A stretch of DNA of 64,000 nucleotides from Macrostomum lignano. Lineage: Eukaryota. The stretch lies in NCBI GenBank assembly GCA_002269645.1, contig NIVC01000010.1:2170001-2234000 (forward strand), written 5' to 3'. The notes below the pieces were generated by a model that worked only from the letters and a program-made list of their open reading frames with translations, did no database searches and was not told the DNA's origin. This document shows positions 7,052-64,000 of the stretch, piece by piece. The translations under genes were made by a program, and so were the position numbers. The stretch's first letter is position 1; each line of letters starts with the position of its first letter.

Positions 7052-7108
7052 GTCAAAAGTCAAAAGTCAAAAGTCAAAAGTCAAAAGTCAAAAGTCAAAA
7101 GTCAAAAG
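7052..7108. repeat. (GTCAAAA)n 7-nt tandem repeat
   Basis: About 8 direct copies. Confidence 0.9.
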
Positions 7109-8315: not shown

Positions 8316-8395
8316 TCTGAGTATTTAGTCTGAGTATTTAGTCTGAGTATTTAGTCTGAGTATTTAGTCTGAGTATTTAGTCTGAGTATTAGTCT
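8316..8395. repeat. 13-nt tandem repeat (TCTGAGTATTTAG)n
   Basis: About 6 direct copies. Confidence 0.9.
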
Positions 8396-9557
8396 TAGAA
8401 AAACTGTTAGCCCTGAAAGATTTCACTCTTCTGATTATTCTGGTAGCGTTCTATTATTCTGGTAGCGTTCTATCTAATAATGGCCTGAGCGGTATTTTGG
8501 CTTACTGGTATATGTATTTCATGTACTTTGCAAGTCCTTGGGCGTTACCGAGATCAGAGGGTCACAGCCTCCGGTTATTCTTACACGTATCACTTCAGAT
8601 CTACTTCGCAACTTCTTACTACTCAACACTTTCCTTCTCAGTAGTATATACGGTACACACTTCCGTCTACTTCACTCTTTCTTAATCTTAAAGAATTAAC
8701 ACAGAAAACACTTCTTCAATTCTTATTTTCTCGGAACTCTTACTATTCGTTATCAATTACTTATTGAACCGCGATGCGCGAGGTTGGTCTCTCTTCCGCC
8801 GAAAAAGCTTCTATTTATACTAAAATTTGCTACAGTTTTAAACAAAAATTCGTTAGTGCAAAATATTATAGAAAATACGAGTATTAAAACAAAATATGTT
8901 TCTTAGTTTTGGCATGAATTCAAATTGACTAAATGGTGACTATTTTATAAAGAAATCGGAAGGGGCCCTGCACAATATCTATATATTTATTTGTATTTGT
9001 ATGTATATATTGGTATATATGTATTATAGCATATATAGTATCTATATGTAACTATGTTATTTATGTCTAATGTTCAAAACTGATTATATGATTATATGAT
9101 TTCTAATTAAATGTTATAGTTTTTCCTATCTATTGTAAAATCAAAACTAAGTTGCTAGGTCCTAGCTATATCATTATAAACATTATTTTATTAACTTTTT
9201 ATTTGTATTTATCCCTCTTATAATTAGCATACAATAAACTATAATAAAGATCATTATTTTTGTTTTGTTCAAATAAATATTGATTATAATCATATATGAA
9301 CTAATAAATCTTACATGATACTAAATATTTATTTTTATATTGTTAACTAATATAAATCTTGGATCCATTTTAGACTAATTGGCTCATTTTTTCTTTTAGT
9401 AGTAGTTTATTTACAAAAAACTTTAAGACTAAGTATATAGCATATTTGATTAGGCCTATATTTTAGGCCTATATATAAATTATCTAAAATATAATAGTCT
9501 TTACAATAATTATTTTTCCTTTTCAGAGCTCAGCATCTTAATATCAAAGTACCAAAG

Positions 9558-9684
9558 ATGATGAGCAAGGTGTTAAGCATATTGTCACTGCCAATATTCT
9601 TTACTCTTATCTATCTGATTTCTAATGGTAGCAGGTGAGTTAATGTACAATATATAATATATTGTATAATTTCTAAGGCTCCTA

Positions 9685-9724
<40 letters not shown>

Positions 9725-12700
9725 TTATTAGACATTTTCTCTTGAACCTACCCTAATAGGCAGCTATGCAAACAATAGCTTAGCAGTAGCTATTATGCAA
9801 TATATCTGAAGGCTGTGTACAGCTGTTCAGTCCAAGGACTAGGAGGGGTCACCATACCCACCCCCATTATCCCAACTTATGATGGCACCCATTTTACAGC
9901 TGGGTATAGGGGCATTGCTATGGGTTTTATGATAGAGGAAAAAAGGCAAGAATTCAACATGTATACTATTTTTAGAATCAGTGTTGTCAGCACTCATTTT
10001 TGCACTGCAGGCACTCATTTGGTACCACAGGCACTCATTTTAGCACTACAGGCGCATTTTAATGCTGCATTCATAAATTTTTGCACTGCAGGCTCTTTTG
10101 ACATTTCATTCACTCATTTTAGCACTGCAGGCTCTTTTTGACACTTCATTCACACATTTTAGCACTGCAGGCTCTTTTGGCGCTTCATTCACTCATTTTA
10201 GCATTGCAGGCTCTTTTTGGCGCTTCATTCACACATTTTAGCACTGCAGGCTCTTTTGGCGCTTCATTCACACATTTTAGCACTGCAGGCTCTTTTGGCG
10301 CTTCATTCACACATTTTAGCACTGCAGGCTCTTTTTGGCGCTTCATTCACACATTTTAGCACTGCAGGCACTCATTTGGTACCACAGGCACTCATTTTAG
10401 CACTACAGGCTCTTTTTGGCGCCACAGGCACTCATTTTGGTGCCACAGGCTTTCATTTTGGTGCCGCAGGCTTTTATTTTGGTGCCACAGGCTTTCATTT
10501 TGGCGCCACAGGCACTCATTTTGGTGCCACAGGCACTCATTTTAGCACTACAGGCTCTTTTTAGTGCCACAGGCACTCATTTTAGCACTACAGGCTCTTT
10601 TTGGCGCCACAGGCACTCATTTTGGTGCCACAGGCTTTCATTTTGGTGCCACAGGCACTCATTTTGGTGCCACAGGCTTTCATTTTGGCGCCACAGGCAC
10701 TCATTTTGGTGCCACAGGCACTCATTTTAGCACTACAGGCTCTTTTTGGCGCCACAGGCACTCATTTTGGTGCCACAGGCACTCATTTTGGTGCCACAGG
10801 CTTTCATTTTGGCGCCACAGGCACTCATTTTGGCGCCACAGGCACTCATTTTGGTGCCACAGGCACTCATTTTAGCACTACAGGCTCTTTTTGGCGCCAC
10901 AGGCTTTCATTTTGGTGCCGCAGGCTTTTATTTTGGTGCCGCAGGCTTTTATTTTGGTGCCACAGGCTTTCATTTTGGCGCCACAGGCTTTCATTTTGGC
11001 GCCACAGGCTTTTATTTTGGTGCCACAGGCTTTCATTTTGGTGCCACAGGCATTCATTTTGGCGCCACAGGCACTCATTTTAGCACTGTAGGCTCTTTTT
11101 GGCGCCACAGGCACTCATTTTGGTGCCACAGGCACTCATTCTGGCACTGTAGGCTCTTTTTGGCGCCACAGGCACTCATTTTGGTGCCACAGGCACTCAT
11201 TTTAGCACTGTAGGCTCTTTTTGGCGCCACAGGCACTCATTTTGGCGCCACAGGCACTCATTTTGGTGCCACAGGCTTTCATTTTGGTGCCACAGGCTTT
11301 CATTTTGGCGCCACAGGCACTCATTTTAGCACTACAGGCTCTTTTTGGCGCCACAGGCACTCATTTTGGTGCCACAGGCTTTCATTTTGGTGCCACAGGC
11401 ACTCATTTTGGTGCCACAGGCACTCATTTTGGTGCCACAGGCTTTCATTTTGGCGCCACAGGCACTCATTTTAGCACTACAGGCTCTTTTTGGCGCCACA
11501 GGCACTCATTTTGGTGCCACAGGCTTTCATTTTGGTGCCACAGGCACTCATTTTGGTGCCACAGGCACTCATTTTGGTGCCACAGGCACTCATTTTGGTG
11601 CCACAGGCTTTCATTTTGGCGCCACAGGCACTCATTTTAGCACTACAGGCTCTTTTTGGCGCCACAGGCTTTCATTTTGGCGCCACAGGCACTCATTTTG
11701 GTGCCACAGGCACTCATTTTAGCACTACAGGCTCTTTTTAGTGCCACTGGCTTTCATTTTGGTGCCGCAGGCTTTTATTTTGGTGCCGCAGGCACTCATT
11801 TTGGTGCCACAGGCTTTCATTTTGGTGCCACAGGCACTCATTTTGGTGCCACAGGCTTTCATTTTGGCGCCACAGGCACTCATTTTGGTGCCACAGGCAC
11901 TCATTTTAGCACTACAGGCTCTTTTTGGCGCCACAGGCACTCATTTTAGCACTACAGGCTCTTTTTTGCGCCACAGGCACTCATTTTGGTGCCACAGGCT
12001 TTCATTTTGGTGCCACAGGCACTCATTTTGGTGCCACAGGCTTTCATTTTGGTGCCACAGGCTTTCATTTTGGCGCCACAGGCACTCATTTTAGCACTAC
12101 AGGCTCTTTTTGGCGCCACAGGCACTCATTTTGGTGCCACAGGCACTCATTTTGGTGCCACAGGCACTCCTTTTGGTGCCACAGGCTTTCATTTTGGTGC
12201 CGCAGGCACTATATTTTGTTTCCATGAAGCAAATTTGTTGATTTCCATAACGGGTCACTAGGTTGGGTAGTGGGACAAAGCATTGGCATGTCCCCATAGC
12301 TTTTACTTGAGGGGAGGGATATTGTCCCCAGGTGGCAACGCCCCTGGCTGAGTGACCTGAATAAATACAGCGTTAAACGACTTGCTCAAATACACAAATT
12401 GCTTCAAGTGAGTAGAGAATCGAACCCCCGACCTTTCAGGCTACGAACCCCTATTAGTCTATTAATCATGCATGTCTGTTGTGGCCCGAAGGAATAGTGA
12501 ACAACCTTAGTGTCTACAAGTATATAATGTAAACCCTGTCACATGTCAGGTTTCACTAAAATTTTACTGTTTCCTACTTACAGGTACTTTCTGACGTCGG
12601 ACATATCGCATGTGTCCCAGCTAGTTAAAGTAATCTTAATTGGTTTTGTTGCCATGCCAATCGCCGCCTTTCTGATTGGCTATTTTCCTGAAAATCTGCG

Positions 12701-12785
12701 ACCAAGTTTCTACCTGGATATCTGGCGCTACGAGAAGCGCAATGCTGGTAAATGGGACGCTAAAGAGAAGACTAAGGCCAGCTGA
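9558..12785 (+). CDS. Small two-TM membrane protein, 92 aa, with C-terminal KxKxx motif; family not recognised
   Basis: Exon 9527-9634 (acceptor TTTTCCTTTTCAG, ATG at 9558, donor GTGAGT) joins in phase 2 to exon 12584-12785 (acceptor TTTCCTACTTACAG). Product: MMSKVLSILSLPIFFTLIYLISNGSRYFLTSDISHVSQLVKVILIGFVAMPIAAFLIGYFPENLRPSFYLDIWRYEKRNAGKWDAKEKTKAS. The frame is open 10 codons upstream of the ATG, so a longer N-terminus is possible. Confidence 0.7.
9907..12346. mobile_element. hAT-like non-autonomous element carrying an expanded minisatellite
   Basis: Ends TAGGGGCATTGC / GCAACGCCCCTG (imperfect TIR, CAGGGG-type). Flanked by GCTGGGTA / GCTGAGTG, a decayed 8-bp TSD matching the SINE sequence GCTGGGTG. 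Confidence 0.65.
9985..12208. repeat. About 21-nt minisatellite array (about 2.2 kb) with interspersed variant units
   Basis: Core TTTTGGTGCCACAGGCACTCA or ...GGCTTTCA, punctuated by TTTTAGCACTACAGGCTCT units. It is the source of all ORFs at 10138-12297. Confidence 0.95.
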
Positions 12786-13379
12786 TCTGACTGACCTGAG
12801 AGCGTTAATGTACCTTTGGCTGTCTCAGAAAAAATATGATATAAACCTTTAATTATAATGTACTGTTAACTTCCTTGCTTGTATGTTTTTATATTGTTTT
12901 TAGACATTCTGCAGCTCGTTTTTTATTTATTACCTTATAGCTGAAATTGTTGGAATGGTCCACAAGAGCAATTGAATTTTTAACTTGAAGGTCAACGACT
13001 TACTCCTAATGACCGCAATTTGATTGTGTTAAAGTCTATTACGACCTAGAGTCGATGCAGCACTGACTTAAATGTATTGGTAACTCTAAGATATGTAGTA
13101 GGACTTAATGGCCTTCAAGATTACACTTCTGACTAAATAGCCATGGGCAGCAAAGACGACAAATTTTTGATTAAGTAAAATGGTCGCATGTTTTTATTTG
13201 TAGTCGCAAGAAAGTAACTAGAAAAGTTTAATCGTTTTATTTGTAATTTTTCTGATTTAAAAAAAATAGAACTTACCAGTTCTTTTCGACAGCTTTGTAA
13301 TAATAGATTAATTGAAGTAAAATGTTTGTGTTTATTCATAACAGCCGATTTGATGCACCAATGCATAAAAACACTTTAA

Positions 13380-13640
13380 GAGACAGGGTCCTGGCGTTAT
13401 TCAAGCGTTACTCTACACAACCGGTGAGAGGCATTACTGCCCATTCCGCAGAATCCCCTGAGCAGGCACACACACAGGAGTGTACAGCGGCCCTGACTTT
13501 ATTTATCGTTAGGCATGTACACTTCACTGCGCATTGGGGGTTGGCCCTAATTGCACGAGCAGAGTTTCCAATTTAGCCCCAAATTAACGTGACTGCACTT
13601 GGAATCGAGCCTGGACCGTTGGCACACGAGAGCACCGCAG
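13380..13640 (-). mobile_element. tRNA-derived SINE, family A (second copy)
   Basis: The reverse complement aligns to 5109-5468 (CCAGGCTCGATTCCAAGTGCAG...CAGTGAAGTGTACATGCCTAAC...GCTCAGGGGA). Confidence 0.85.
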
Positions 13641-15248
13641 AGTTAGTTTTGAGAGGCTTAGGATGTTTTAAAAAGAAAATTACTATTAATTTCCAGATCA
13701 ATTGTACTTAAAATTATTGTACAAGATAAAACACCCACTCTTAGTAGGTTTGACTTGTGCATATCGCGTCTACATGTAGCTAAGTCGCATTCGTTACTTT
13801 TTTTAACTGACACGAGGGTAGATGCACTTTTAACAAGTGACAATTCTAGTATCTATGCAGAAAACAGCTATAATAAAGCAATTAAGAGTGCTATGCAACA
13901 AATCTGTTTATGTATGTTTATAAACTTGAATTGCCAAACAGCCCAACTCAAATATACTTGTACAATATAGAACTAAAACAAACTGGCAAAAAGAACTCAT
14001 AAAATTGAATCCACTCGTGTATGGATATTGGATATCCCCAAGGCATTAAAAGCATTTGGGAAAGATTAGCGTTTAGCTAAAGGAAAACATGCACTTTCAT
14101 AGAGATTTTATATTTCGCCTTAATTTCAGAGATGTTTAATTAAAGCTTAACAACAAAAATTAATAACATACATAAGTAAAGTTAATGCAGAGCTAAAGAA
14201 AGCTTTAGATGTGGGAAGCATGTAATATCACTTGAAAAAATACACAGTTTTCAGTCTCAGATTCAGAACAAAACTATTAATTTAGGGATCATGCAACTAA
14301 GTAAAGAGAAATTTATAAATTAAAAGCGACAAAATACGAGTAGGCAGTGGTTGAAAAGAAAACAGATTCTGCGGGATAAAAATGCAAAACGGGTTAAATA
14401 ATAATTCAATTTTATAACTCTCCCATGGCCCGTTAGAGTGAGAAGAACTCCAAGAATTCGACAGGTAATTCTTATTCGGCCTGAATACAATAGGCTGTGC
14501 ACTACACGTATGTACTGTATCTGAGATAAGTGAAGGAAAACCGCATCGATGATAGAGAGGAAAGTTCTTAAACCAGCGGTTACACGTACAATTGACAATA
14601 ATTTAATTTTTCAGTAAGGTAGCTATAAGTAGTATGACAAGATTATTCTAACTAAAACACTATAAAAAACGAACAAAATTGCCTTAATTTTTTCGGATTT
14701 CACATAAGCTAACTACTATAAGTAACAAGATGAGGATTAAAATTAGTTAGTATCTCTTTTTGGTAGTAGCAAAGCAAGTTAGGCTAAAATTGTTGATTAT
14801 TATTAATTAGTTCAGCTGGATAGGCAGACCACGGGTTCTGAAAACAAAATGGCAACAATAAAATCGTATTTATTAGCCAAAGAGACCTGATCTGATTTTA
14901 AATAATAAAAACTTACTTAATGCATTGCCGCGACTTATAGAGACAAGAATGGTTTAGTTACGAAGCTGAAATTAATTGAGAGAAGAACAGCAAATGACTT
15001 TCACGGGGCAGTGTGAAGTGGGTCGCAGATTCTTGCCATTCTCACACTCGCGCTACCTGCCTAACCGCTACCAAATCAGCTTAACTAGGATTCACTTAGG
15101 CTCGCAACCATTAAAAAAATTCATCCAAGAAATTCAAGTAAAAATTTCTAAAACATCCCCTGTCTGCTTTCAACGCTTCAGCTTGATTTGCGAACTTGAA
15201 AAAGGAAGTTATTTTTAGTACAGAAAAAAACAAAAAAAATCTTTTTAC

Positions 15249-18200
15249 CTGCCCAATAACTCGTTCGTCCTCGTCTTCCTCCATGTCATCCTCGTCCCCA
15301 TCTTCGCCCTGTTAAATTAAAATAAAGTTCAAGTAGTATTTCCAACCTTAATTAGGACTAAAGGAAGACGAATCGCCAAGACTAAAGTTTATGATTTATC
15401 TAAACATGGTTCCTTAGTAATTTCGATACGCGTTTTAAAACCTCTCCCTGTCTGAACGGGATCAGGTTGAATTATCTCCCGAGATATTCTCGTAGATATT
15501 CTTTTAGCAAAGAGCGAGATTTATATTCCTAACTGAACGTGCAGCAAAAACAGCTGTCTATAGTCTATGGTTTGACTGTACTGTGTGGTGTACAGTTTAG
15601 TGTTGATTTGTAATTAATAAAGAATGCGTGTTTGGAGTAAATGCGTATGTTGCAATATGCGTGTAGAAACTTTATATATCTGTCCCTCATCAGGTTCATA
15701 GGCGGAATTTTGAATCTATCCGATAAGAGGGAGTGTCACAACATACATTTATCTTGGCCTTTTTTATTGAGACAACCCGTTATATAATCCTTGATTCTAG
15801 ACGGCACAGTCAACAGAGTTGACCATAGACTATACTCTAGATTATTTACCATAGTCTATTGACCATAGACTAAACTGCCAATTTAACATTTCGCTATGCA
15901 AAACAACACACATGCGCAACACCCGGCGCCCAGCCAAGGTAAGTCGCAAAAATGCCCACCCGAAAAAATACAGACGTAGTACTAGTTAGATGACGAGGCA
16001 TTTGGCCCTTAAAAGACAGTCAATTACTCCTGCCGTTTACTCAAAATTGCGTTAATTTTTGCTTTGGGTTTCTTTCGCAGGCAAGTCGCAGTTTTGGTAA
16101 AAAAAAAGTAAGTCGCACGGCCAGTGTAAATCAGAGGGGGTTGCGCATGTGTGCAAAACAATATGCGACGGTTTGTCCATATTACTTTTAAGCCGCTATA
16201 ATTTACTGCTTGCAAGGAGTCTAAAAAGAGCATGTCAATAGAAAGCTATAATATTCAAGAGACGATGTACGCTCGTATTATTTGATAATTTATTTTTACT
16301 TATTCTACTGTCGAAGATTGAGATTCAGGCTGACGCTTGACTGGAGTTTGAAGAGTCAGGAATCAGTAAGCCTATGATAAATATCAGAATAGATAGAAAT
16401 CACGCAGTGTCAGATGCAGGATCAATCAAGCATTCAGTGCTTATCAATTTTTCATTGGGTTTCATACATAGTCAAAGGAGCCAGCTTCATCCGTTGCAAC
16501 TTATCAAGCAGCTTAATTCCCCACGGCCTGGCTTATTGAATTTCTCTCCTTTCTATCAAACGACTCTGGAGCTCCCTATCTGTAGCTTAAATTCCATTTC
16601 CCAGCGAAACAGCACGGAAAATAGAAGGAATCGATCGATGACACATTTAAGAGACTATGAACGTCATTCAAACTTCTATTTAATGTAGCAATTCTGCCAA
16701 TATTTCATACCTTTAAAAAAGGATTCTATTTTAACTGGGGCAATTTAAGTACTGCAAACTAAAGCTGGCACTCACCTCGTCATCCTCGCTTTCGTACTGC
16801 AATGAAAGATATAAAGTTCTTATTAGTGCTTTATAATTACAATACTTTTATACGTAATTACTTAAGACCCAAAATTCTCAACTATTTTACAATCCTTATA
16901 CACTAACAGTAGTTGATGTACTTTAGTGCAGACTCGCAGAAAGTAAGACGTACTTCACTCCATTTCTAATATCAGTTCCATAGCTGGATAAAACGCTTAA
17001 ATTCAACGTGTTTATTTGAGGTAGTCAAATAATAATTAACAGTAATCGATGCAATTGAACTGGGTAAATGCAAGAGCATCAACACAGACAAAACCACAGA
17101 AAAAAAACAAATTAAAAACTGAAGTACATCGTCTAACGACAAAATTAAAACACGAGTGCCTAATCAACTCAATTATTTGTTGATCAAAACTATACACAAA
17201 ACTGACAACCGAAAAATAATCAGCTAACGAACTATAATAAAAAACAGCCCTTAAATTACACTACTAAATTTATTAATCACGATAAAACTGAAGAGCTAAT
17301 CAAGTAACAAGGAGCAAAGTGAATGATTACTTATTAGCGGTAGCGAATGGAATATCTACATTTAATAATGATGATTTACTAGACGAAATACATATATACA
17401 CAAAATTCAATTAACTATTCATACTATTAAACTAGTTTGTTTAACTCATGATCATGCTACAGTCTCTTTGTAGTAGAACACAGTTCGACCACCGCTGCGA
17501 CCGCCGCCGCCGCCACTGCCGCTTCCACCTTCGCCACCGTTGCGTCGCTCGGGCAGCCGGCCCAAGCTGGCATGCCTATCAAACTCAGCCGCTCCTTCGC
17601 CACCAACTGGATAGTCAAAATCGTCGTCGACATCATCATTGTCCTCGTCGTTATACTCGACAGCGTCTGCTACCGTCGAATCAACTACCTGACCGCGTTG
17701 TCTACGGTGGTGACGCCTTCGACGCGACGAACCGTAGCAGTTCAGCGAGAAGCGCAACTCGCTAGACATTTCCGACCACAGCGAGCGACCTTCGTCAGCG
17801 GCGGCTTCTGCATTTTTTCGCGTATTCCAAACAAACTCAACAACGGCTACAAAGACTGCTAGCAGCAGGCCGCAGACAAGCACTACGAAAATGCCGCCAA
17901 CGTTGTGCATGCCCAGCTCAGAGGCCGTTGTCTCCTGCGGATCTTTGCCTCGGCAAGTGCCAGTCTCTTTCCACCATTTATTTTTAAGCGCCTGCAACTG
18001 CTGGTCGCGCTGTAGTTCGAGAATTTTTAGGGTCAGTTCGTCGCGAAGCTCCTCACGATTCGGCCTGATCCCAAGGCCGTAGCCTTTGCTATCGATTAGG
18101 CCGCCAATCTGCACTAAGTTGCACTGACGCTCAATGTGATATTCGATCATTGCCGATTCCATTAAGAAAGCATATCCACCCCTTTTCACTCTTTCAATGG

Positions 18201-21200
18201 CTTCCATTGTGGTGGCCGTTTTCAAATGTTGCCGTGATCTCATATACTTGGCCATCCTAGCGTAGGTTTCTATATGAGAAGTTTCGAAGAATGTCTCAGT
18301 CGATCCGCCAGCTAGAACGCCATATTCTATAGCGGTCTGTTTCGATAGATCGTCTGCGCTCTCTATTGGCGATACCATGCGTTCAACAGTAAGAAAAGCG
18401 GCCAGGTTAGCCGTATACGAGCTTATTATAATTAGCGTGAAGAACCACCAAATGCCAGCAACGATACGCGTGCTGACAGCTCGGGGATTTATATTCGATC
18501 CTTGTTGCATAAGCGTGCCAACTGTGAACCAGAAAGAGTTGGATAATGAGAAACTGTTCACTAAGTAGCCGATATCTTCGTCGCAAGGATGCGGCGAAAC
18601 CCACTCGTAGGGCGAAAATCTCGCTAGAGCGTAGATCATTAGCGTCACCAACAAGTAAGCCGCAACAACGTACAACCAGATTTCCACAGCTAACGGATTA
18701 AGAAAACTAAACAGACCGGGCTTTTCACCTTTCGGCTTCTTGAAAAGAATGCTAATGCCTAAATTCATAAACGGTTTAGTGAAATCGATCGCCTTCTCTC
18801 GTTCGTAAGTGATAGTAAAGGAGCCCAGGGCAATGTCAGCCCTGCCGTCAATAAGTTCGCGAACCATGCCGTTCCACTCGCAGTTACAACCGCTATTTTC
18901 GGTGGCTACTGACCCCGATGCCTGATCCCTAGAAGCAGAAGACGATTCCAACTGCTTCGTCTGCTTATTTTTATCGCAAGGCAGTTCAACACAGATTCCG
19001 TATTTGTCGTCAGGAGATCGATAGATAACCCAGTCCATGCCGGTTCGATTGGCTATTAGCTCCATCATGTCGATGCAAAAGCCTTCCAGGTGTTGGCGGT
19101 GAAATTCTACATCTGGTCGAATGTGACCATTAATTAAATAGCGATTATGATATTCGCGCTTGACCCAGATAAACGGCTTAGCAGCCAATGCTACAACGCG
19201 AAGCACTTTGTTCTTCAATGGATAGACAACTGCCAAATCGTAGGGCTCGCTAAAGACTTGCAATCCATGTCTGGGAGTCCAGTTGGCGAAACGAACCGGA
19301 CCATTTGCTTTCAGATGATAAAGATCAAAGCTAACCGCCTGTCTAGACTTCTTGCTGTCGAATCTTAACTGGCCAGTAAGACCATTGCGCAAGTCCACCG
19401 AGTGCAGATAATTCATCAGACTACCACCAAACGGCGACCGCAACGCGTTGTTGTGCTCTCCAGCAGTGCCGTTAAATGACATCAAAGCATCGCAGCTCGG
19501 ACCAAGCGGTGGCTTGATATGCCTACTGAGGCTGAGACTGGCAAGAGCGCTGGCCAGCACCTGAACAGCATCGTAGATTAACGCTGCGCCAAGCGTCATT
19601 TGCCCGCCGCGTGTTAGCAAGACTCCATCCGGATTAACTAATCGTTGCTTGTTAGACCAATCGCGCATATCAGCCAACACGGAATTGTAGTGCGTCCAAT
19701 TGCCAGGTACAACACGAAATGCAGTTAGATTAACGTGATTATGCCTGTAATCTTCAAGGTCAAGTGTCATAGCGTCCAAGTTAGCTAATATGTAATGATA
19801 GCGTCGGTTCATCAATCCGCGATTAGTAGCGGCGCGTAAAAAATGAGCAGTGGCTTCTAAACTGAGGTCCAGAACCATGGTGCACCAGCCAGCTGAGTCG
19901 ATCTCAGAGAGTAGACTGTATACTTGACTAGCCAGGTAGCGTTTAATCCGAAAATATAGTGCCCTAGTCTCGTGACGATTGCGCAAAATTCTCTCTAGAC
20001 GGAATAGACTTTCGTCATTCTCATAAACTATAAGAACATCCTGCCATTTAAAATAGTCGATAGCGGCTATAACGCTCAGACTGATATGATCAAGCGACGG
20101 ATAGAGATTGAGCACAAAACCGTGGGCGGCATTTGAAGCGGATTCTTGAGCAGAAATCATCGGACGCAAATCCAACTGCGGCGTTTGCGTAGCCGTCGCC
20201 ATAGAAGCGAAATACTCGCTAGTTGCGCAGGCATGATGCGGACCGATCAGTGCCAGGGCGCCGGCTTCAAGCATCCGGCAAACGGCTTGGTTAGCTTGAA
20301 AACTGTCCTCGCCTTCGGCTAGCATAGTTACTATTGGCAACAGGTCGTGACGACAAAATATTGTTGAATCATTATTTGAGTATCGTCGACTCATACTAGC
20401 CAAAGCGTAATGGAGCGCGTTACGTTTGCGTAATTCTTCAATGCCAGAGCCGAATATGGCTCCTAATCTTAGCTTAGTTTTGTGCACGGGACAGGAGGCC
20501 GCTGCTGCAGCAGTTGCAGTCAAGTGCGCAGCCACAACCAACGCCAGCAGAGTGGGCGATAGCCAATTCATTTTATGTTATTTATTAAGTTGAGCTTCTT
20601 TGATCAACAAGTTAGTTGTTATTAGCTACAGATTGACAGTTGGTTGACTTTGAAACAGGGCTTCGTTCTTGCTGCATGGTCTGATTTTTTTATTTTTAAA
20701 AAATCACACAAACAAAAAGCCGCAGATATATTAATAACAATAATAATAATAATGAATTCGGCTTAGCCGAGAGGAGAGGCAACTTAGCAGTCGGATAGGC
20801 CACACCGGGAAGAGCCGAGGCTGATATAAGTGAAAGCGGTGGAAAAAGAGAAGAGAGGAGAGGAGGAGAGAGGAGGACAGTGGAGAGAAGGAGGGTCGAG
20901 GTGGCAGCAAGGGACGGTGACTGGCTGGAAAGTTCAGGAGGAGGTTGAGCTAAGGGGAATCTCCAAAAAGAGAGCGAGTGAAATAAAAATACGGTGTGAG
21001 GTAGGTGCAGGGGAAACCGAGGGGATTATACAGTATATTGCGGGCAGGAGGGGGGAAATGAGCTAAACGAGAAATGGGAGGACAGATGGGCGGGAAATCC
21101 GAGCCAGAGAGGGTCGAAAAGACCCTGGGATATTTCAGAGAAAAGCAAAAGAGGAATCGGAGGATGTTGAGACTTGGCAACGTAGAGAGGATTTGGGGAG

Positions 21201-24200
21201 TTGTAAAAAGGAAACAGGGAGAAACCGAGGAGGCAGTATAATACGGTAGATCAGTGCCAATTCTGCAGGATATTCTCGTGAGGACAATTTACGACAAGGG
21301 AGAGAATTAGCTGCAGAAGAATGAAGCGAGTCGGTGAAGAGGGTTGGCTGGTTTTGGGATAGAGTTCACAAGCTGGCGTAGTTTGTATTGAGAAACTGCA
21401 ATATTGGCTGTGTTGAATAAACATAATTATGGATTTTTTCTCTATTTGACAGTTATATCCCAAATTGCCTTAAGGGATACCACACCTTTAGGATACTGTA
21501 AGTAGGTACTGTAGGATACTGTAAGAAGTGCTGTAGGATACTGTAGTGTAAGAAGTGCTGTAGGATACTGTAAGAAGTGCTGTAGGATACTGTAAGAAGT
21601 GCTGTAGGATACTGTAAGAAGTGCTGTAGGATACTGTAAGAAGTGCTGTAGGATACTGTAAGAAGTGCTGTAGGATACTGTAAGAAGTGCTGTAGGATAC
21701 TGTAAGAAGTGCTGTAGGATACTGTAAGAAGTGCTGTAGGATACTGTAAGAAGTACTGTAGGATACTGTAAGAAGTGCTGTAGGATATTGTAAGAAGTGC
21801 TGCAGGATACTGTAAGAAGTGCTGTAGGCTACTGTAAGAAGTGCTGTAGGCTACTGTAAGAAGTACTGTAGGATACTGTAATATGAGGTGCTGTAGGATA
21901 TTTTAGGAAGTGCTGTAGGATACTGTAAGAAGTGCTGTAGGATACTGTAAGAAGTGCTGTAGGCTACTGTAAGAAGTACTGTAGGATACTGTAATATGAG
22001 GTGCTGTAGGATATTTTAGGAAGTGCTGTAGGATACTGTAAGAAGTGCTGTAGGATACTGTAAGAAGTGCTGTAGGATACTGTAAGAAGTGCTGTAGGAT
22101 ACTGTAAGAAGTGCTGTAGGATACTGTAAGAAGTGCTGTAGGATACTGTAAGAAGTGCTGTAGGATACTGTAAGAAGTGCTGTAGGATACTGTAAGAAGT
22201 GCTGTAGGATACTGTAAGAAGTGCTGTAGGATACTGTAAGAAGTGCTGTAGGATACTGTGTTGTAGGAAGTTTTGTAGACTAGTATATAGATTTTAAGAG
22301 CAGCTTAAGGTTGGGATTCTTAGCAGATTTACCAGCTGGACTCAAACCCAGATTAAAAATTTTTACGTCTAAAAGTTACTCTTTGGGGCATTTAAATCCA
22401 TTTGCTTAAGCTTCTTAACTAAAAACCTCTTTACTAAGGATCAGTTAAATTCTAAGTAAAAAAATCTGTAGCACTTACGTCTTCATCTTCGAGTCCTTCG
22501 CCAGTGAAGTACAGGACCGCACGGGGTATGACTCTTTCGCGAAGAAAGTGCCCGATTTCGAAGTCAGATTGAAGCAGGTCTTCGATCTCTTCGTCCTGTA
22601 ATTTTATTGAGTATCTGATTGAGCATTTTAAATTGTAATCCCGATCGAGTGCTTAGCTGTCACCTAAAGTGCAGCTTGAATATGAAACAAATACTGCACC
22701 ATTATCTACCACACACTAATTTAAAAGACATTCACTGTACCAATGAAAAGTGCAAGCAACCTAACCTAGTATTATAAAAACCATATATCAATGCCCCTTA
22801 GGAAAACTGGGTTTTTACCGCACGATTCTGCAAAAAATAATAATGTTAAAGCTTTATGAATTTAATGTAATTACCTAGAATTACATTAGCACTGAACTGC
22901 CAAATGGAAGCTGTTGTTGAAGGACAAATGACCCTATCTAACACCCGGAACTGACTGACCATATCTAACACCCCAAACACACTAAAACTTTCTTACACCT
23001 CAAACAGACTGAGCCTATCTAACACCCGGAACTGACTGACCATATCTAACACCCCAAACACACTAAAACTTTCTTACACCCCAAACAGACTGAGCCTATC
23101 TAACACCCGGAACTGACTGACCATATCTAACACCCCAAACACACTAAAACTTTCTTACACCCCAAACAGACTGAGCCTATCTAACACCCGGAACTGACTG
23201 ACCATATCTAACACCCCGAACAGACTAAACCTATCTAACACCCCGAACTGACTGACCATATCTAACACCCGGAACTGACTGACCCTATCTAACACCCCAA
23301 ACAGACTGACCCTATCTAACATCCCAAACAGACTGACCCTATCTAACATCCCAAACAGACTGACCCATCTAACACCTCAAACAGACTGACCCTATCTAAC
23401 ACCCCAAACAGACTGACCCTATCTAACATCTCAAACAGACTGACCCTATATAACATCTCAAACAGACTGACCCATCTAACACCTCAAACAGACTGACCCT
23501 ATCTAACACCCCAAACAGACTGACCCTATGTAACACCCCAAACAGACTGACCCTATCTAGAATATTAAACCAGCTAGAAATTCTAACAATTTGATTAATG
23601 ACGAAAAAAGAGTAAACATCAGAACCCATATCACTGTCTTATAATAATTATCGAAATGGAAAAAAGTTAATCTGATTTAATCTACCTATCTATCCAAGAA
23701 CTGCCGGTACAAACTTATAGGAAATTAATTATATTCAAAGTCCCAGCCTTGATCGCATTAGCACTCGCACATCTTGACAGGAAATATCCCTAGCTCCCAT
23801 TATTACACATAGGAAATCAATCAATATTGTATACAATCTGCAGAAACTGCAGAAACAGAATTATTTATCTACATCTATCTATATGTCATTAGAATATATC
23901 AACTATACTTAAATTCAATCATCATAGCCAACATCAATCAATCAATCAATCTATCAATCAAGAAAATTTCTCGCGCGCATAAACGATAATTGCATCAAAT
24001 CTGGTCGGTAAAAATACGCGAGATGAGAAAAGGGGATAGAGAGAGGGGGGGAGACAGACATAATGAGAGAAACAAGGATAGAAGGTCTACAAAACTGACT
24101 TATATACGTAGATATTATTATTACACGCTAGCCAGTATATTAGCAGGGTACTCGTAGCGTGCAGCATGGCCTCAGGGGGGTACGCGTGAAAGAGCGAGAC

Positions 24201-27200
24201 GGAGGCACTCGAACAAACGAGATAAGAAACAGAATCAGCCAGGGAGCACAGCATCAACACATCTGGCTATGATAGGAAACAAGAAATGCAAGAGTAAAAC
24301 AAGAATCAACACGATTAGGTAGAATCAGTGCTTGTTTATATGAGAGAGGAGGGTAAGAAAACAGAAGGGGGGCAGAGGAGAGGAAGAGAGGAGAGACAAA
24401 GAGGGAGAGCGAGGAGAGAATAGAGAACCATACAGTAGAGTTAGAGGAGAACCAAGAGAAGAGAGAGGAGAACCAAGAGGAGAGAGAGGAGAACCAAGAG
24501 AAGAGAGAGGAGAACCAAGAGAAGAGAGAGGAGAACCAAGAGGAGAGAGAGGAGAACCAAGAGGAGAGAGAGGAGAACCAAGAGAAGAGAGAGGAGAACC
24601 AAGAGGAGAGAGAGGAGAACCAAGAGGAGAGAGAGGAGAACCAAGAGGAGAGAGGAGAACCAAGAGGAGAGAGGAGAACCAAGAGGAGAGAGGAGAACCA
24701 AGAGGAGAGAGAGGAGAACCACAGAGGAGAGAGGAGAACCAAGAGGAGAGAGGAGAACCAAGAGGAGAGAGGAGAACCAAGAGGAGAGAGAGGAGAACCA
24801 AGAGTAGAGAGGAGAACCACAGGAGAGAGGAGAACCACAGAGGAGAGAGGAGAACCACAGGAGAGAGGAGAACCACAGGAGAGAGGAGAACCACAGGAGA
24901 GAGGAGAACCACAGGAGAGAGGAGAACCACAGGAGAGAGGAGAACCACAGGAGAGAGGAGAACCACAGGAGAGAGGAGAACCACAGGAGAGAGGAGAACC
25001 ACAGGAGAGAGGAGAACCACAGGAGAGAGGAGAACCACAGAGGAGAGGAGAACCACAGAGGAGAGGAGAACCACAGAGGAGAGGAGAACCACAGAGGAGA
25101 GGAGAACCACAGGAGAGAGGAGAACCACAGGAGAGAGGAGAACCACAGGAGAGAGGAGAACCACAGGAGAGAGGAGAACCACAGAGGAGAGGAGAACCAC
25201 AGAGGAGAGGAGAACCACAGGAGAGAGGAGAACCACAGGAGAGAGGAGAACCACAGGAGAGAGGAGAACCACAGGAGAGAGGAGAACCACAGGAGAGAGG
25301 AGAACCACAGGAGAGAGGAGAACCACAGAGGAGAGAGGAGAACCACAGGAGAGAGGAGAACCACAGGAGAGAGGAGAACCACAGGAGAGAGGAGAACCAC
25401 AGGAGAGAGGAGAACCACAGGAGAGAGGAGAACCACAGGAGAGAGGAGAACCACAGGAGAGAGGAGAACCACAGGAGAGAGGAGAACCACAGGAGAGAGG
25501 AGAACCACAGGAGAGAGGAGAACCACAGGAGAGAGGAGAACCACAGGAGAGAGGAGAACCACAGGAGAGAGGAGAACCACAGGAGAGAGGAGAACCACAG
25601 GAGAGAGGAGAACCACAGGAGAGAGGAGAACCACAGGAGAGAGGAGAACCACAGGAGAGAGGAGAACCACAGGAGAGAGGAGAACCACAGGAGAGAGGAG
25701 AACCACAGAGGAGAGAGGAGAACCACAGAGGAGAGAGGAGAACCACAGAGGAGAGAGGAGAACCACAGAGGAGAGAGGAGAGCCACAGAGGAGAGAGGAG
25801 AACCACAGAGGAGATAGAACTACACAGTAAACACAGGAGAGAAAAGATAGAATTTTCAGGCCCAAATCCAAAAAGGCATCAAAGTGTGTCCACTTAGATA
25901 AGATTAGGACCCATATAATCTACAGCACGATATCAGATATCACCAAGTCTTCGATAACAAACAGGAGAAACATGCACAAATAATTTCCATTCCAGGCGTG
26001 AATTTCCAGAAGTCCTTGCGCGGCCCAATATATAGCCCAGCAGCATGCAGAGGCAACAGGGCATATAAAACACTCAAGCAAGCGCACACAGTACCTTCCG
26101 ACCTCGATGATGAGAGAAAGGAAGGAAGAACCGCGTTAATTGCATTAGAATGCAGCTCAGCTCAGGCCACCCCTATCCCTAGCCCCCCTCGCCTCAGTCC
26201 AACAAGAAAAAGCCGACGAGGCTGAGAGCGTTAAATTGAATTAGTGAGGCCGAGTGCATCCTATTAGACAAGAGTTCGAAGCGAAAAAATGTGCAAGTCC
26301 ATCAATACTTTGGTGGAAAACTGAAGTTTACCTGCTTAGCCTAGCCTACTCAGATTACTTCCTGCTAGAGAAACATCTCAGAGAAAGACTATTGACCCAA
26401 AGCTGTTTAAGTGTGTCCATGTGTCTTAACTATAATTAACTAAGCCAGTTTTAACGGTTCAGGGGTCACTGCTCAGTGAAATCGGCTTGCCCAAGACTCT
26501 GGGTCCGTGCTAGATTTAATGTAGAGTCTCTGAATCATGTTTGAAGTGCCCCAACTAGCCTACTGAGTTAGTAGAAAGTACCTCAATTAAACAAGAAAAG
26601 AAAATTTATAAGTTTAAAAAAATTATAAACAGAAAAAAATTAACAAGCTAATAAGCACTTACATCTGATCCCAACTCGTCAATAGCTGAAACAGTCAAAC
26701 GGGATAAGGTAAGAAAAACAAAAATAATAAATTAATTTACAAAATCTTAGTTGCAAACACGCGATGCCCATGAGACAATTATTGCGACAGGATAAAATAG
26801 CATACAAAAAGCTTATATTGCTACTAACAACCGATTTTGAGTAGAAATATACGAATTTTACTTCTAGTTTTACTCTCAACAATTTAATTCTTTCGCAAAT
26901 CACGATAATTACATCCCAAACTTTCTCATTAAAGTCAGTCCATCAAATCAACAAGTCAATCTATCAAATCAACAAGTCAATCTATCAAATCAACAAGTCA
27001 ATCTTTCAGAAATCAACAAGTCAATCTATCAGAAATCAACAAGTCAATCTATCAGAAATCAACAAGTCAATCTATTAGAAATCAACAAGTCAATCTATCA
27101 GAAATCAACAAGTCAATCTATCAGAAATCAACAAGTCAATCTATCAGAAATCAACAAGTCAATCTATCAGAAATCAACAAGTCAATCTATCAGAAATCAA

Positions 27201-30200
27201 CAAGTCAATCTATCAGAAATCAACAAGTCAATCTATCAAAAATCAACAAGTCAATCTATCAGAAATCAACAAGTCAATCTATCAGAAATCAACAAGTCAA
27301 TCTATTAGAAATCAACAAGTCAATCTATCAGAAATCAACAAGTCAATCTATCAGAAATCAACAAGTCAATCTATCAGAAATCAACAAGTCAATCTATCAG
27401 AAATCAACAAGTCAATCTATAAGAAATCAACAAGTCAATCTATCAGAAATCAACAAGTCAATCTATCAGAAATCAACAAGTCAATCTATCAGAAATCAAC
27501 AAGTCAATCTATCAGAAATTAACAAGTCAATCTATCAGAAATCAACAAGTCAATCTATCAAATCAACAAGTCAATCTATCAGAAATCAACAAGTCAATCT
27601 ATCAGAAATCAACAAGTCAATCTATCAGAAATCAACAAGTCAATCTATCAGAAATCAACAAGTCAATCTATCAGAAATCAACAAGTCAATCTATCAGAAA
27701 TCAACAAGTCAATCTATCAGAAATTAACAAGTCAATCTATCAAAAATCAACAAGTCAATCTATCAGAAATCAACAAGTCAATCTATCAGAAATCAACAAG
27801 CCAATCTATCAGAAATCAACAAGTCAATCTATCAGAAATCAACAAGTCAATCTATCAGAAATCAACAAGTCAATCTATCAGAAATTAACAAGTCAATCTA
27901 TCAGAAATCAACAAGTCAATCTATCAGAAATCAACAAGTCAATCTATCAGAAATCAACAAGCCAATCTATCAGAAATCAACAAGCCAATCTATCAGAAAT
28001 CAACAAGTCAATCTATCAGAAATCAACAAGTCAATCTATCAGAAATCAACATGTTAATCTATCAGAAATCAACAAGTCAATCTATCAGAAATTAACAAGT
28101 CAATCTATCAAAAATCAACAAGTCAATCTATCAGAAATCAACAAGTCAATCTATCAGAAATCAACAAGTCAATCTATCAGAAATCAACAAGTCAATCTAT
28201 CAGAAATCAACAAGTCAATCTATCAGAAATCAACAAGTCAATCAAATCAGAAATCAACAAGTCAATCTATTAGAAATCAACAAGTCAATCTATCAGAAAT
28301 CAACAAGTCAATCTATCAGAAATCAACAAGTCAATCTATCAGAAATCAACAAGTCAATCTATCAGAAATCAACAAGTCAATCAATCAGAAATCAACAAGT
28401 CAATCTATCAAAAATCAACAAGTCAATCTATCAGAAATCAACAAGTCAATCTATCAGAAATCAACAAGTCAATCTATCAGAAATCAACAAGTCAATCTAT
28501 CAGAAATCAACAAGTCAATCTATCAGAAATCAACAAGTCAATCTATCAGAAATCAACAAGTCAATCAAATCAGAAATTAACAAGTCAATCTATCAAAAAT
28601 CAACAAGTCAATCTATCAGAAATCAACAAGTCAATCTATCAGAAATCAACAAGTCAATCTATCAGAAATCAACAAGTCAATCTATCAGAAATCAACAAGT
28701 CAATCAATCAGAAATCAACAAGTCAATCTATCAGAAATCAACAAGTCAAACTATCAGAAATCAACAAGTCAATCAAATCAACAAGTCAATCTATCAGAAA
28801 TCAACAAGTCAATCTATCAGAAATCAACAAGTCAATCTATCAGAAATCAACAAGTCAATCAATCAGAAATCAACAAGTCAATCTATCAGAAATCAACAAG
28901 TCAATCTATCAGAAATCAACAAGTCAATCAAATCAACAAGTCAATCTATTAAACCTACAATCTAATAGCAAAACAAGCCAATAAGCCACTCACTCTGCGT
29001 TGGCGGATTGAAGAAGTTAAAGAACGAATCCGCCTCGACAGTCTTCGTGACAGTTCGCTTCTGCCCGCTGCCCCGGTGCTTCTGCACTTTGCGCACCACT
29101 TTAACCGTGGCATTTTTGCCAGCCTTCCACAGGATCTCGCAGCCGCTGCAGCGAACAATCTCGGGGCCCTCATAGTCCCACGGGTGCTCAGGATCCGGCA
29201 CCATTCTCAAATAATAATGCTTAGTAAGCATACTATTAGAGAAGTATTCGTTTGGCGAGAAATGAAACTCCAATACGAAACCGCTCTGCTCTCCGCTGAA
29301 CGTGATCACCTTGATGTCGGTCAGGTGGCGCAGTATCGGCTCGTCTTGATCGCGAATCATCTGGCTCAGCAGGTCGACGTTCTTGAGCGCCGTCAGCCAG
29401 AACCCCGGCACGCCTGGGCCTGCGGGCTGCTGCAGCTGCTGCTCCGACTGAGGTGCGTCACCGGCCTGACCTCCGGCTCCGTTGGTCAGAGCCGTCTGGC
29501 GAGGGAAGGGGGGGATAATGGCTCTAATTAGGATATCTGATTGGGATTTCTAATTGGGATCTATATTGAGATTTCTAATTAGGATTTAAAGTGGGGGTTT
29601 ATAATTTGGATTTCTAATTGAATTTCCAATTGGAATTTCTAATTGGGATATAAAGTGGGGATTTCTAATTGGGATTTCTGATTGGAATTTCTAGTTTGGA
29701 TTTTTAATTAGGATTTCTAGTTGGGATTTCTAATGGGGATTTCCAGTGAGGATTTCTAGTGGGGATTTCTAATTGGGATTTCTAGTGGGGATTTTTAAAG
29801 GGGATTTCCAGTGAGGATTTCTCGTGGTGATTTCTAGTGGGAATTTATAGTGGTGATTGCTAGTGGGGATTTGATTTATAGTGGGGATTTCTAGTGAGGA
29901 TTGCTAGTGGGGATTTCTAATGGATCTTCTACAGGGGATTTCTAATTGGGAATTTTAATGGGGATTCCTAGTGGGGATTTCTAATTGGCATTTTTAGGGG
30001 GATTTCTAGTTGGGATTTCTAATGGAGATTTCTAATGGGGATTTCTAATGGAGATTTCTGGTGAAGATCTCTAATTCTAGTAGGGATTTCTAGTGCGGAT
30101 TTTTAATGAAGATTTCTAGTGGGGATTTCTAGTGGGGATTTCTAGTGGGGATTTCTAATTGGGATTTCTACTGGGAATATGATAGCTAAACAATCGCCCT

Positions 30201-33200
30201 CACCTTCTCCCTCAGCAGATTTGCCAGTTCAACCTCAGACTCCGTGGTCTCCGGCCAGTCAGCCTCCTCATCAGTTGGCTCAACGCTGCCCAGAACAATT
30301 TGCTGTCGCCGATTCAACTGCTCGGCAAATCGATCGGCGTAGCGCATCTCCAAATCGTGCAGCTCGCGGTAGAACTCGGACTCAATTTCCAGCGAGCGGA
30401 ACTGCAACTTCTTGAGGGCGCGAACCCGGCGCTTCACCGGCTCCGGCAGCCTGCGGTGCGACATCATTGGTTGGGGGCGATTTTTAATTTTAATTTTAAT
30501 TGAGAGGCGATTTTTATGGGGATAAAAATAAGTTTAATTTTAATTTTAATTTGAGAGGCGATTTTTATGGGGATTAATTTGAGATGCGATTTTTATGGGG
30601 ATTAATTTGAGAGGCGATTTTTATGGGGATTAATTTGAGAGGCGATTTTTATGGGGATTAATTTTAGAGGCGATTTTTATGGGGATTAATTTGAGAGGCG
30701 ATTTTTATGGGGATTAATTTGAGAGGCGATTTTTATGGGGATTAATGTGAGAGGCGATTTTTTTAAGGAATTAATTTGAGGGGCGATTTTTATGGGGATT
30801 AATTTGAGATGCGCTTTTTATGGGGATTAATTTGAGAGGCAATTTTTATGGGGATTAATTTGAGAGGCGATTTTTATGGGGATTAATTTGAGAGGCGATT
30901 TTTATGGGGATTAATTTGAGAGGCGATTTTTATGGGGATTAATTTGAGAGGCGTTTTTATGGGGATTAATGTGAGAGGCGATTTTTTGAGGGATTAATTT
31001 GAGGGGCGATTTTAATGGGGATTAATTTGAGAGGCGATTTTTATGGGGATTAATTTGAGATGCGATTTTTATACGGATTAATTTGAGAGGCGATTTTATG
31101 GGGATTAATTTGAGAGGCGATTTTTATGGGGATTAATTTGAGAGGCGATTTTTATGGGGATTAATTTGAGGGGCGATTTTTATGGGATTAATTTGAAAGG
31201 CAATTTTTTAAAAGTTATAAGTTTGAATTGCAAGAGTGTGAGGTGTTTAAGATGCCAAAACACACAACATGTATAACAAAAATATTTTTATGTTTTTTAA
31301 TAACGAATGAAAATGATACAGATAGCAGTCCAGACTAGATTAATACAATAGCATAGAGCAGTAATTATAATAAAAAATCCAGCCCAAATGATAGATGGAC
31401 GGTTATAAGATATCAAGTAAATCAAAAAAGAAGATATAATAAGGATGCGATAATTTTAGAACAGCTCGAATAATATTCTCCCATGGGGAATGCAGGGCAA
31501 GGCAAGATTAATCCCAAACATCCCAAATATCCGTCTTAGATTTTTTCCCATTTCTTGACTTCCGAAGGCAGAATTTTTAATCCATCAATCATTTTTATTC
31601 TTTTTTTCCTGTGAAAGAATATTTAGTAGGATTATATTTTACACAAAGGGAGAATTTATGTATCTTTGTCGTTGGAGATTAAAAGTACTTAGAGAGTCCT
31701 CAGAGTGTCACGAGATAAAGGACCCACTGAAATACAGAATGATACGACTGAGATAACCGAGGGCCATATATTGGTCCCAGGTCGCTTCATGGAAATAGAA
31801 ATTTCAAAATCTACACAGTATAATTTTACCAGCAGAAATTTTATACCCCAGAACAGGGGCCGGCAAACTTCGGCCCGCGAAGCCCCTCTATCCGGACCAG
31901 CTCGAATCTTTTGAAATTTCACAATAGCAATCCGGCCCGCTTAAGATTTGCGTCTCTTCTCAGCTCTCTTCTCTCCTCACTCCCTTCTCTCTTCTCTCCT
32001 CACTCTCTTCTCTCATCACTCCCTTCTCTCTTCTCTCCTGACTCCCTTCTCTCTTCTCTCATCACTCCCTTCTCTCTTCTCTCCTCACTCCCTTCTCTCT
32101 TCTCTCATCACTCCCTTCTCTCTTCTCTCCTCACTCCCTTCTCTCCTCACTCCCTTCTCTCTTCTCTCCTGACTCCCTTCTCTCTTCTCTCATCACTCCC
32201 TTCTCTCTTCTCTCCTCACTCCCTTCTCTCTTCTCTCATCACTCCCTTCTCTCTTCTCTCCTCACTCCCTTCTCTCTTTTCTCCTCACTCCCTTCTCTCC
32301 TCACTCCCTTCTTTCTTCTCTCCTGACTCCCTTCTCTCTTCTCTCATCACTCCCTTCTCTCTTCTCTCATCACTCCCTTCTCTCTTCTCTCCTCACTCCC
32401 TTCTCTCTTCTCTCCTCACTCTCCTCTCTTCTCTCCTCACTCCCTTCTCTCATCACTCCCTTCTCTCATCACTCCCTTCTCTCTTCTCTCATCACTCCCT
32501 TCTCTCTTCTCTCCTCACTCTCCTCTCTTCTCTCCTCACTCCCTTCTCTCATCACTCCCTTCTCTCATCACTCCCTTCTCTCTTCTCTCATCACTCCCTT
32601 CTCTCTTCTCTCATCACTCCCTTCTCTCTTCTCTCATCACTCCCTTCTCTCTTCTCTCCTCACTCTCTTCTCTCCTCACTCCCTTCTGTCTTCTCTCATC
32701 ACTGCCTTCTCTCCTCACTCACTTCTCTCATCACTCCCTTCTTTCCTTACTTCCTGCTCTCTTCTGTTATCACTCCCTTCTCTTTTCTCTTCTCTCCCTA
32801 CTCCTCTCTTCTCTTATCTCTCCTCTCTCATCCAGCCATGAGCTGGATGCTTTGTTTGTTTCTCAAGTTAAAAACAATTGCCAAAACTTCTTGCGCAACC
32901 AAAGAGGCGCATAAATTCGCGCAATCTATGGCAAATACCCAAAACATGCACTTCCTCACAAAGAACCTTGACATATTTGTGCCTCTTACCTTTGATAACT
33001 GCCAAAGGCATCCAGACGTTTCTCTGCCACCGTGGACTCGTCCGTGTCAGACATTTTAACCGATCAAAATTTGCTTATTACAGCTTTACAGCTCGACTTG
33101 GGGTCGTTGAATTTCTATGCAATATAAGCACACACTTGCAAGAATATGCATGCGAAGGCACTCATATATATATAGCAACTCCACTCTCTCCAACTTGAGA

Positions 33201-62730: not shown

Positions 62731-64000
<1,270 letters not shown>

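Follow-up and report, generated by a model that had tools for sequence, protein, structure and literature searches.

How does an animal express a complete gene that lies in the same orientation inside an intron of another gene, where every full-length transcript of the host would carry the guest's entire reading frame and its polyadenylation signals? This question is raised by a locus of the free-living flatworm Macrostomum lignano, in which the intronless coding sequence (CDS) of a kainate-type ionotropic glutamate receptor occupies intron 6 of a gene encoding a NAP1-family histone chaperone. The stretch of DNA analyzed here, referred to as the window, comprises 64,000 nucleotides of scaffold NIVC01000010.1 (assembly Mlig_3_7, GCA_002269645.1), and window position p corresponds to scaffold position p + 2,170,000. 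A 41,116-bp locus fetched around the NAP1 gene (L004) is 100% identical to window positions 46069..4954, which confirms that the window is the published scaffold. The interval harboring the two genes is a real locus and is neither a product of chance nor a misassembly, and the evidence on balance favors a host/nested pair in which the receptor would be transcribed from a promoter of its own within the intron. Three aspects of the organism are relevant to this interpretation. M. lignano employs spliced-leader (SL) trans-splicing (PMC5730564, PMC8629364), it is described as a hidden polyploid following a recent whole-genome duplication (PMC10468722), and the genes of Mlig_3_7 were annotated from transcript evidence (RNA-seq together with a de novo transcriptome, trans-splice sites, and reads marking poly(A) sites) rather than ab initio (PMC5730564).

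The NAP1 host gene and its exons

The host gene has nine coding exons distributed over 21 kb of the minus strand. Canonical GT/AG sites were enumerated around tblastn matches and the resulting translations compared with the annotated protein (P0130, GenBank PAA94506.1, BOX15_Mlig006736g1), and only one nine-exon GT-AG combination yields the 375 residues of this protein. All of the following features derive from that unique model, with additional support given in parentheses.

36030..36069, minus strand: NAP1 coding exon 1, with the ATG at 36069
35824..35929, minus strand: NAP1 exon 2 (tblastn match to P0008, 100%)
30204..30450, minus strand: NAP1 exon 3 (tblastn)
28994..29495, minus strand: NAP1 exon 4, core of the NAP domain (tblastn; PF00956 on P0130)
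26663..26685, minus strand: NAP1 exon 5, 23 nt
22479..22595, minus strand: NAP1 exon 6, DEEIEDLL...EGLEDED, donor GTAAGT (81% alignment to L003)
16797..22478, minus strand: NAP1 intron 6, 5682 bp, host to the receptor
16776..16796, minus strand: NAP1 exon 7, 21-nt micro-exon, YESEDDE (YEDEDDE counterpart in L003)
15249..15308, minus strand: NAP1 exon 8, GEDGDEDDMEEDEDERVIGQ (tblastn)
14954..14965, minus strand: NAP1 exon 9, LRN and stop

Precomputed Pfam results place the NAP domain (PF00956) on both P0130 and P0008, the latter being the product of a second genomic NAP1 copy described below, and the acidic C-terminal tail YESEDDEGEDGDEDDMEEDEDE is present in the protein. Both GenBank NAP1 proteins end in ...EGLEDED-YESEDDE-GEDGDEDDMEEDEDERVIGQ-LRN. 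A cDNA-like Logan contig (L003, run SRR28338165, 1390 nt), whose source is presumably another Macrostomum species, codes for a NAP1 with 79% identity and shows no break over the counterparts of exons 3-9, the 21-nt micro-exon (YEDEDDE) and the 3-codon last exon among them. Because the Mlig_3_7 annotation is transcript-based and L003 is contiguous over exons 3-9, it is clear that exons 6 and 7 are joined in one NAP1 mRNA. The 5' end of L003 differs from the M. lignano gene, as approximately its first 320 nt (L003:1-320) do not match NAP1 exons 1-2 and the called ORF (open reading frame) begins with MRFSARLPEP rather than MSGHIE..., reflecting either a chimeric assembly or a different 5' end.

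An earlier, sequence-only reading of this DNA had identified the host as NAP1, which PF00956 bears out, and had placed exon 6 at 22595-22479 and the 21-nt exon 7 at 16796-16776, positions that coincide exactly with the model matching PAA94506.1. It had also raised the concern that NAP1 might end before 16796 or that exons 7-8 might belong to another gene; neither is borne out, as the tails of the GenBank NAP1 proteins contain these exons and L003 is continuous through exons 3-9.

The nested receptor

The receptor CDS (20571-17452) lies entirely within NAP1 intron 6 (22478-16797), and the features of the intron relevant to it are as follows.

17452..20571, minus strand: intronless CDS of a kainate-type ionotropic glutamate receptor, 1039 aa (ORF, Pfam, PDB ranking, dN/dS)
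20720..21490, minus strand: unique pyrimidine-rich, ATG-poor block upstream of the receptor ATG (identity between copies, ATG count)
21489..22259, no strand assigned: 22-bp minisatellite, ~35 copies, in the 5' part of intron 6 (tandem-repeat scan)
17011..17366, minus strand: 3' flank with candidate poly(A) signals, ATTAAA at 17366 and AATAAA at 17274 and 17016 (hexamer scan)

The ORF comprises 1039 codons from the first ATG after a stop, with an in-frame stop codon two codons upstream of this ATG. Pfam detects ANF_receptor (PF01094, 3e-30), Lig_chan-Glu_bd (PF10613, 3e-29), and Lig_chan (PF00060, 2e-52), and the protein displays a signal peptide, an amino-terminal domain (ATD), a bipartite ligand-binding domain (LBD), a pore loop with three transmembrane segments, and a C-terminal KETVA. 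When compared with all PDB sequences, the receptor matches GluK2 at 623 bits, GluK1 at 594, 7ysv (described there only as 'Glutamate receptor') at 584, and GluK3 at 576, with GluK5 (511 bits), GluA4 (467 bits, the best AMPA subunit), and GluA2 (447 bits) ranking lower. In alignment with GluK2 (5kuf_A), the agonist-binding Arg (ITYEREK, S1) and Glu (FLMES, S2) are retained, Q occupies the Q/R site (MQQG), the gate reads SYTANLAAF (ssytanlaafltverm), and SYTANLAAFLTVERM is present. The top 120 database matches to the receptor core are all named as kainate-type, and the core is up to 64% identical to mollusc and arthropod proteins so named. This search, aimed at further M. lignano paralogues and their intron content, returned only proteins of at most 669 aa and missed both P0001 and P0002, the latter being a paralogue treated below, so that absence from such searches is no evidence. 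The similarity ranking supports assignment of the receptor to the kainate type. The sequence-only reading had described the nested ORF as complete, kainate-type, and on the host's strand, and it is upheld on each count, with 623 bits for GluK2 against 467 for the best AMPA subunit and both genes on the minus strand.

The receptor shares with GluK1-3 and Drosophila KaiR1D-like receptors the ATD-LBD-transmembrane domain architecture, the ligand-binding Arg and Glu, the pore Q (MQQG), and SYTANLAAFLTVERM. GluK2 carries the PDZ ligand ETMA at its C-terminus, to which the -ETVA of the nested receptor is comparable. Unlike these kainate receptors, the nested receptor has an insertion of ~35 residues in S1 (residues ~528-562), low-complexity acidic and Gly-rich stretches in its C-terminal tail, and 'GGST' rather than 'DGAT' in S2, and its gene is intronless.

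A second copy of the locus and selection on the receptor

The window has a collinear counterpart on scaffold NIVC01001022.1 (L001), which matches it at 91-96% nucleotide identity for more than 50 kb and carries the other NAP1 copy (P0008). The receptor ORF is found there in the same NAP1 intron (24472-27591), between exon 6 (22382-22498) and exon 7 (28233-28253). The two receptor CDSs align without gaps and differ at 41 synonymous and 17 non-synonymous positions, corresponding to 0.060 synonymous substitutions per site (dS), 0.007 non-synonymous substitutions per site (dN), and a dN/dS of 0.12. From this ratio and the presence of intact ORFs without indels in both copies, it follows that the receptor is under purifying selection and has been so since the locus was duplicated, and, because both copies carry the receptor in the same NAP1 intron, that the nesting is older than the duplication.

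The comparison between copies also draws attention to the region upstream of the receptor. Positions 20800-21399 contain just 4 differences per 600 bp (identity 0.99-0.995), whereas the 3' flank has diverged by ~4.5% and synonymous sites by 6%. On its sense strand, the upstream block has 2 ATGs where 9.2 are expected under a first-order Markov model (0.005 of simulations had 2 or fewer), and a 747-nt ATG-free run precedes the receptor start codon, as expected for a long 5' untranslated region (UTR). The block at 20720-21490 is thus a candidate promoter or 5' UTR of the receptor. The other copy does not share an upstream ATG present at 20677 (ACCATGCAG vs ACCATACAG). Two small ORFs within the conserved block (20830-21066, plus strand, and 20950-21180, minus strand) have no Pfam match and were rejected as coding, and since an Rfam scan of the whole window returned 0 matches at the gathering threshold, the intron contains no known noncoding RNA.

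Between this block and exon 6, each unit of the 22-bp minisatellite (CAGCACTTCTTACAGTATCCTA) contains two matches to YTNCAG, the M. lignano acceptor consensus, on the sense (minus) strand, which places ~70 acceptor-like motifs directly 3' of the exon 6 donor (21489-22259), all of which are skipped in the annotated mRNA. From the minisatellite to the ATG, YTNCAG occurs at 21396-21401, 21311-21316, 21263-21268, and 20925-20930, with none between 20925 and the receptor ATG, i.e., within 350 nt of the ATG, although this motif alone is too short to be informative.

Annotation of the receptor in public databases

The receptor is uncalled in GenBank both at NIVC01000010.1:2,187,452-2,190,571 (minus strand) and in the duplicate on NIVC01001022.1. 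When the receptor protein was looked up by exact sequence in public assemblies, no record was returned, and no gene with such a product is on record. UniProt holds only a truncated receptor model (A0A1I8I3N7, 944 aa), which matches the copy of the L001 type, and UniParc holds a 1222-aa ab initio chimera (P0128, UPI0007A3255E) in which NAP1 exon 6 is fused in frame to receptor residue 34 with loss of the signal peptide. The junction of this model employs the following site.

20470..20474, minus strand: cryptic AG acceptor aaaactaag/CTAAGA, first exon base 20472, used by P0128 (P0128 junction)

A NAP1 fragment from the older annotation (P0129, UniProt A0A1I8HV33) is found in the receptor's 90% cluster, apparently through the P0128 fusion. 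Evidently, the same-strand nesting confused both annotation pipelines. The 'g1/g2' suffixes of the BOX15 names were considered as possible operon positions, but this was rejected, as they label copies within a 95% cluster (PMC5730564).

Expression of the nested gene

We consider it probable, though by no means assured, that NAP1 and the receptor form a host/nested pair in which the receptor constitutes a separate transcription unit, driven by a promoter within the intron, and is removed together with that intron from the NAP1 pre-mRNA. In this arrangement, receptor transcription would start at a promoter in the conserved ATG-poor block, ~0.15-0.9 kb upstream of the ATG, and would end at one of the AATAAA/ATTAAA signals 85-440 nt past the stop codon. 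Transcription from the NAP1 promoter would run through the entire receptor unit as part of the intron, exon 6-7 splicing would remove it, and the intronic poly(A) signals would mostly be ignored in the NAP1 pre-mRNA. A separate promoter is favored over processing of the NAP1 pre-mRNA because an acceptor with a donor upstream in cis is expected to be cis-spliced, following the rule of Conrad et al. that an acceptor is trans-spliced only if there is no donor upstream in cis (as cited in PMC8629364). Several points weigh against this interpretation. The transcript-based GenBank annotation does not call the receptor as a gene in either copy, and the searches recovered no RNA-derived contig for it, although those based on homology have the blind spots described above (both P0001 and P0002 were missed). 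The placement of the promoter draws solely on conservation between two copies that are 4-6% diverged and on ATG depletion in a low-complexity stretch, and no promoter motif was identified in the upstream block.

Alternatively, the receptor might have no promoter of its own, its mRNA being cut from the NAP1 primary transcript in an operon-like manner by SL trans-splicing upstream of the ATG. Such processing has some appeal in this species, as M. lignano trans-splices ~30-39% of its genes, ~15% are in operons, and ~7% of assembled transcripts have several trans-splice sites (PMC5730564, PMC8629364). The two genes share a strand, AATAAA is found at 20694 and 20586, just 5' of the receptor ATG and adjoining a pyrimidine tract ending in ...atcag, and translation past the exon 6 donor runs into a stop after 10 codons, so that a short NAP1 isoform polyadenylated at AATAAA 20694 might constitute an 'alternative operon'. 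In these respects the locus resembles the SL-resolved operons of M. lignano, Caenorhabditis elegans, and Ciona, where same-strand genes are under one primary transcript in species that trans-splice. It differs from them in that the receptor lies inside an intron of the upstream gene rather than past its poly(A) site, and the annotated NAP1 3' end is downstream of the receptor. Under the rule in PMC8629364, the exon 6 donor upstream in cis should prevent trans-splicing, as a good intronic acceptor would be cis-spliced to it, and YTNCAG is absent from 20925 to the ATG. The 1.9 kb that separate exon 6 from the start codon, or ~1.1 kb minus the minisatellite, also fall outside the spacing typical of operons (mode ~100 bp, <1 kb repeat-adjusted; PMC8629364), and the arrangement would force a presumably neuronal receptor and a chaperone into co-expression. 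Taken together, an operon-like origin of the receptor mRNA appears unlikely. We assign a still smaller chance to a conditional form of it, in which the receptor would be an 'intronic cistron' of the NAP1 transcript, with cleavage at AATAAA 20694 and rescue of the receptor mRNA by SL trans-splicing in some cells and exon 6-7 splicing discarding the receptor in others. If true, this would produce a tail-less NAP1 isoform ending in ...EDEDVSATDFFT, and one promoter would serve two unrelated genes via a switch between splicing and polyadenylation.

The remaining explanations deny the receptor an expressed product of its own or question the locus itself. If the ORF were an untranscribed relic, or a recent pseudogene not yet degraded, this would fit its absence from the transcript-based GenBank annotation at both copies and the failure to find a transcript, but such a reading is very unlikely given two intact 1039-codon ORFs without indels, the excess of synonymous over non-synonymous differences (41 to 17, dN/dS 0.12), and the retention of all functional motifs; moreover, a pipeline that works by transcriptional units can easily miss a low-abundance neuronal mRNA that comes from an intron of a well-expressed gene. 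There is even less reason to accept a genuine chimera in which exon 6 is spliced to the receptor ORF. P0128 does join ...EGLEDED to LRFGAIF... in frame via the AG before 20472, but it is an ab initio model that also invents introns within the receptor, a fusion product would be a membrane receptor without its signal peptide, and both the transcript-based model and the cDNA-like contig of the related species join exon 6 to exon 7; we therefore find such a product scarcely credible. An assembly artefact, or an origin of exons 7-9 from another gene, is the least plausible of the explanations considered, even though the region is rich in minisatellites, which can mislead assemblers, as the same arrangement occurs on two independent scaffolds whose collinearity extends for more than 50 kb, and the GenBank proteins of both copies as well as L003 have the NAP domain continuing into the acidic tail encoded by exons 7-9. 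The second scaffold likewise argues against a misassembly, which the sequence-only reading had listed as a possible objection.

How unusual is the nesting, and how did it arise?

Among human nested genes, ~63% are antisense to their host and ~37% are on the same strand, and 41% are single-exon (PMC3192792). The sequence-only reading, which had set the pair against the mostly antisense nested genes, thus overstated its rarity, and the NAP1/receptor layout is only mildly unusual: a minority case, but an ordinary nested gene rather than an anomaly, and a guest with a single exon is nothing out of the ordinary. Like other intronic nested genes of animals, it has a whole, single-exon guest in one host intron, with host and guest functionally unrelated; it stands apart in that the pair is same-strand in an SL trans-splicing flatworm and that the guest is known here from sequence alone. 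Both orientations have familiar human examples, with F8B in intron 22 of F8 in the same direction and OMG, EVI2A, and EVI2B in NF1 in the opposite direction.

The intronless CDS had also been taken as compatible with a retroposed or relocated copy. The 3.1-kb CDS is indeed intronless, but retroposition is unsupported, as its hallmarks are missing and a paralogue is intronless as well. The idea of a processed retrocopy that landed in the NAP1 intron concerns only the origin of the gene and is compatible with its present-day transcription as an independent unit. In other animals, ionotropic glutamate receptor genes are usually multi-exonic, which speaks for such an origin. The absence of any intron from a 3.1-kb CDS is likewise suggestive beside an average of ~5 introns per M. 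lignano gene (PMC5730564 Table 3). The nested receptor shares with processed retrogenes the intronless CDS and a new context in the intron of an unrelated gene. It differs from them in lacking a poly(A) tract (no A-run of at least 6 in 17451-16797, after the receptor 3' end), a target-site duplication (no direct repeat or shared k-mer of at least 10 nt between the 5' and 3' flanks), and an identified intron-bearing parent, although the hallmarks of retroposition could have decayed. The only receptor paralogue recovered (P0002) is 58% identical and free-standing on the same scaffold ~2.15 Mb away, and it too is intronless, with 3030 bp for 1009 aa and a locus whose direct translation gives the query protein. 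In order to learn if the nesting came before the duplication of the receptor, NAP1 exons were sought around it (L002, ±10 kb), and none were found, so this paralogue is outside any NAP1 gene. Because P0002 is intronless as well, the loss of introns probably predates the nesting at NAP1, and the intronless state is weak evidence for retroposition into the intron. A retrocopy is therefore a doubtful, if still appreciable, possibility; it is one of three candidate modes of arrival, the others being a move at the DNA level and an extension of NAP1 around a neighbor.

Surroundings of the locus

Every long NAP1 intron (introns 2-6; window 21489-32814) has its own distinct minisatellite, and these arrays make up much of the gene's 21-kb span. 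Besides the 22-bp array at 21489-22259, they are as follows, none with an assigned strand.

22929-23559: 27-bp minisatellite
24443-25808: 18-bp minisatellite
26945-28774: 23-bp minisatellite
29523-30175: 13-bp minisatellite
30546-31208: 28-bp minisatellite
31953-32814: 16/23-bp minisatellite

The tandem-repeat scan covered periods up to 500 bp; a longer satellite at 43505-54666, with a period of ~661-662 bp, ~17 tandem copies that are ~98.5% identical, and a flat GC content of 0.42, was seen by its self-match offset (662 bp). Downstream of NAP1, the neighboring gene is represented by an exon at 1050-1517 (minus strand) encoding the C-terminal two thirds of an eIF4E domain (PF01652, 1e-49). GenBank calls a 100-aa gene at 9534-12785 (plus strand; L004:33285-36536, the minus strand of that locus), which overlaps a 21-bp/145-bp tandem array at 10329-12218 and for that reason is probably an ORF derived from the repeat and no genuine gene; the matching position on L001 (32911-34653) carries a 100-aa call too. 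Two ORFs in NAP1 intron 2 (33527-33856 and 35410-35736, both plus strand) have the common peptide ILQLGELKQCRVK.LAQGH, and window 5127-5467 has a 340-bp match of 88% to an unrelated locus (L002:19274-19612). The ORF pair and the latter stretch look like dispersed repeats or transposon fragments. A 189-aa ORF at 62749-63318 (plus strand) lies in a GC-rich stretch (0.53) adjoining a 19-bp tandem array and has no Pfam match.

Implications

The NAP1/receptor pair adds a new example to a known and fairly common arrangement, and its practical value lies mainly in the annotation of M. lignano. Beyond this, the locus provides a test case for how a trans-splicing animal prevents a sense intronic gene, along with that gene's poly(A) signals and dozens of motifs resembling acceptors, from interfering with the splicing of the host.

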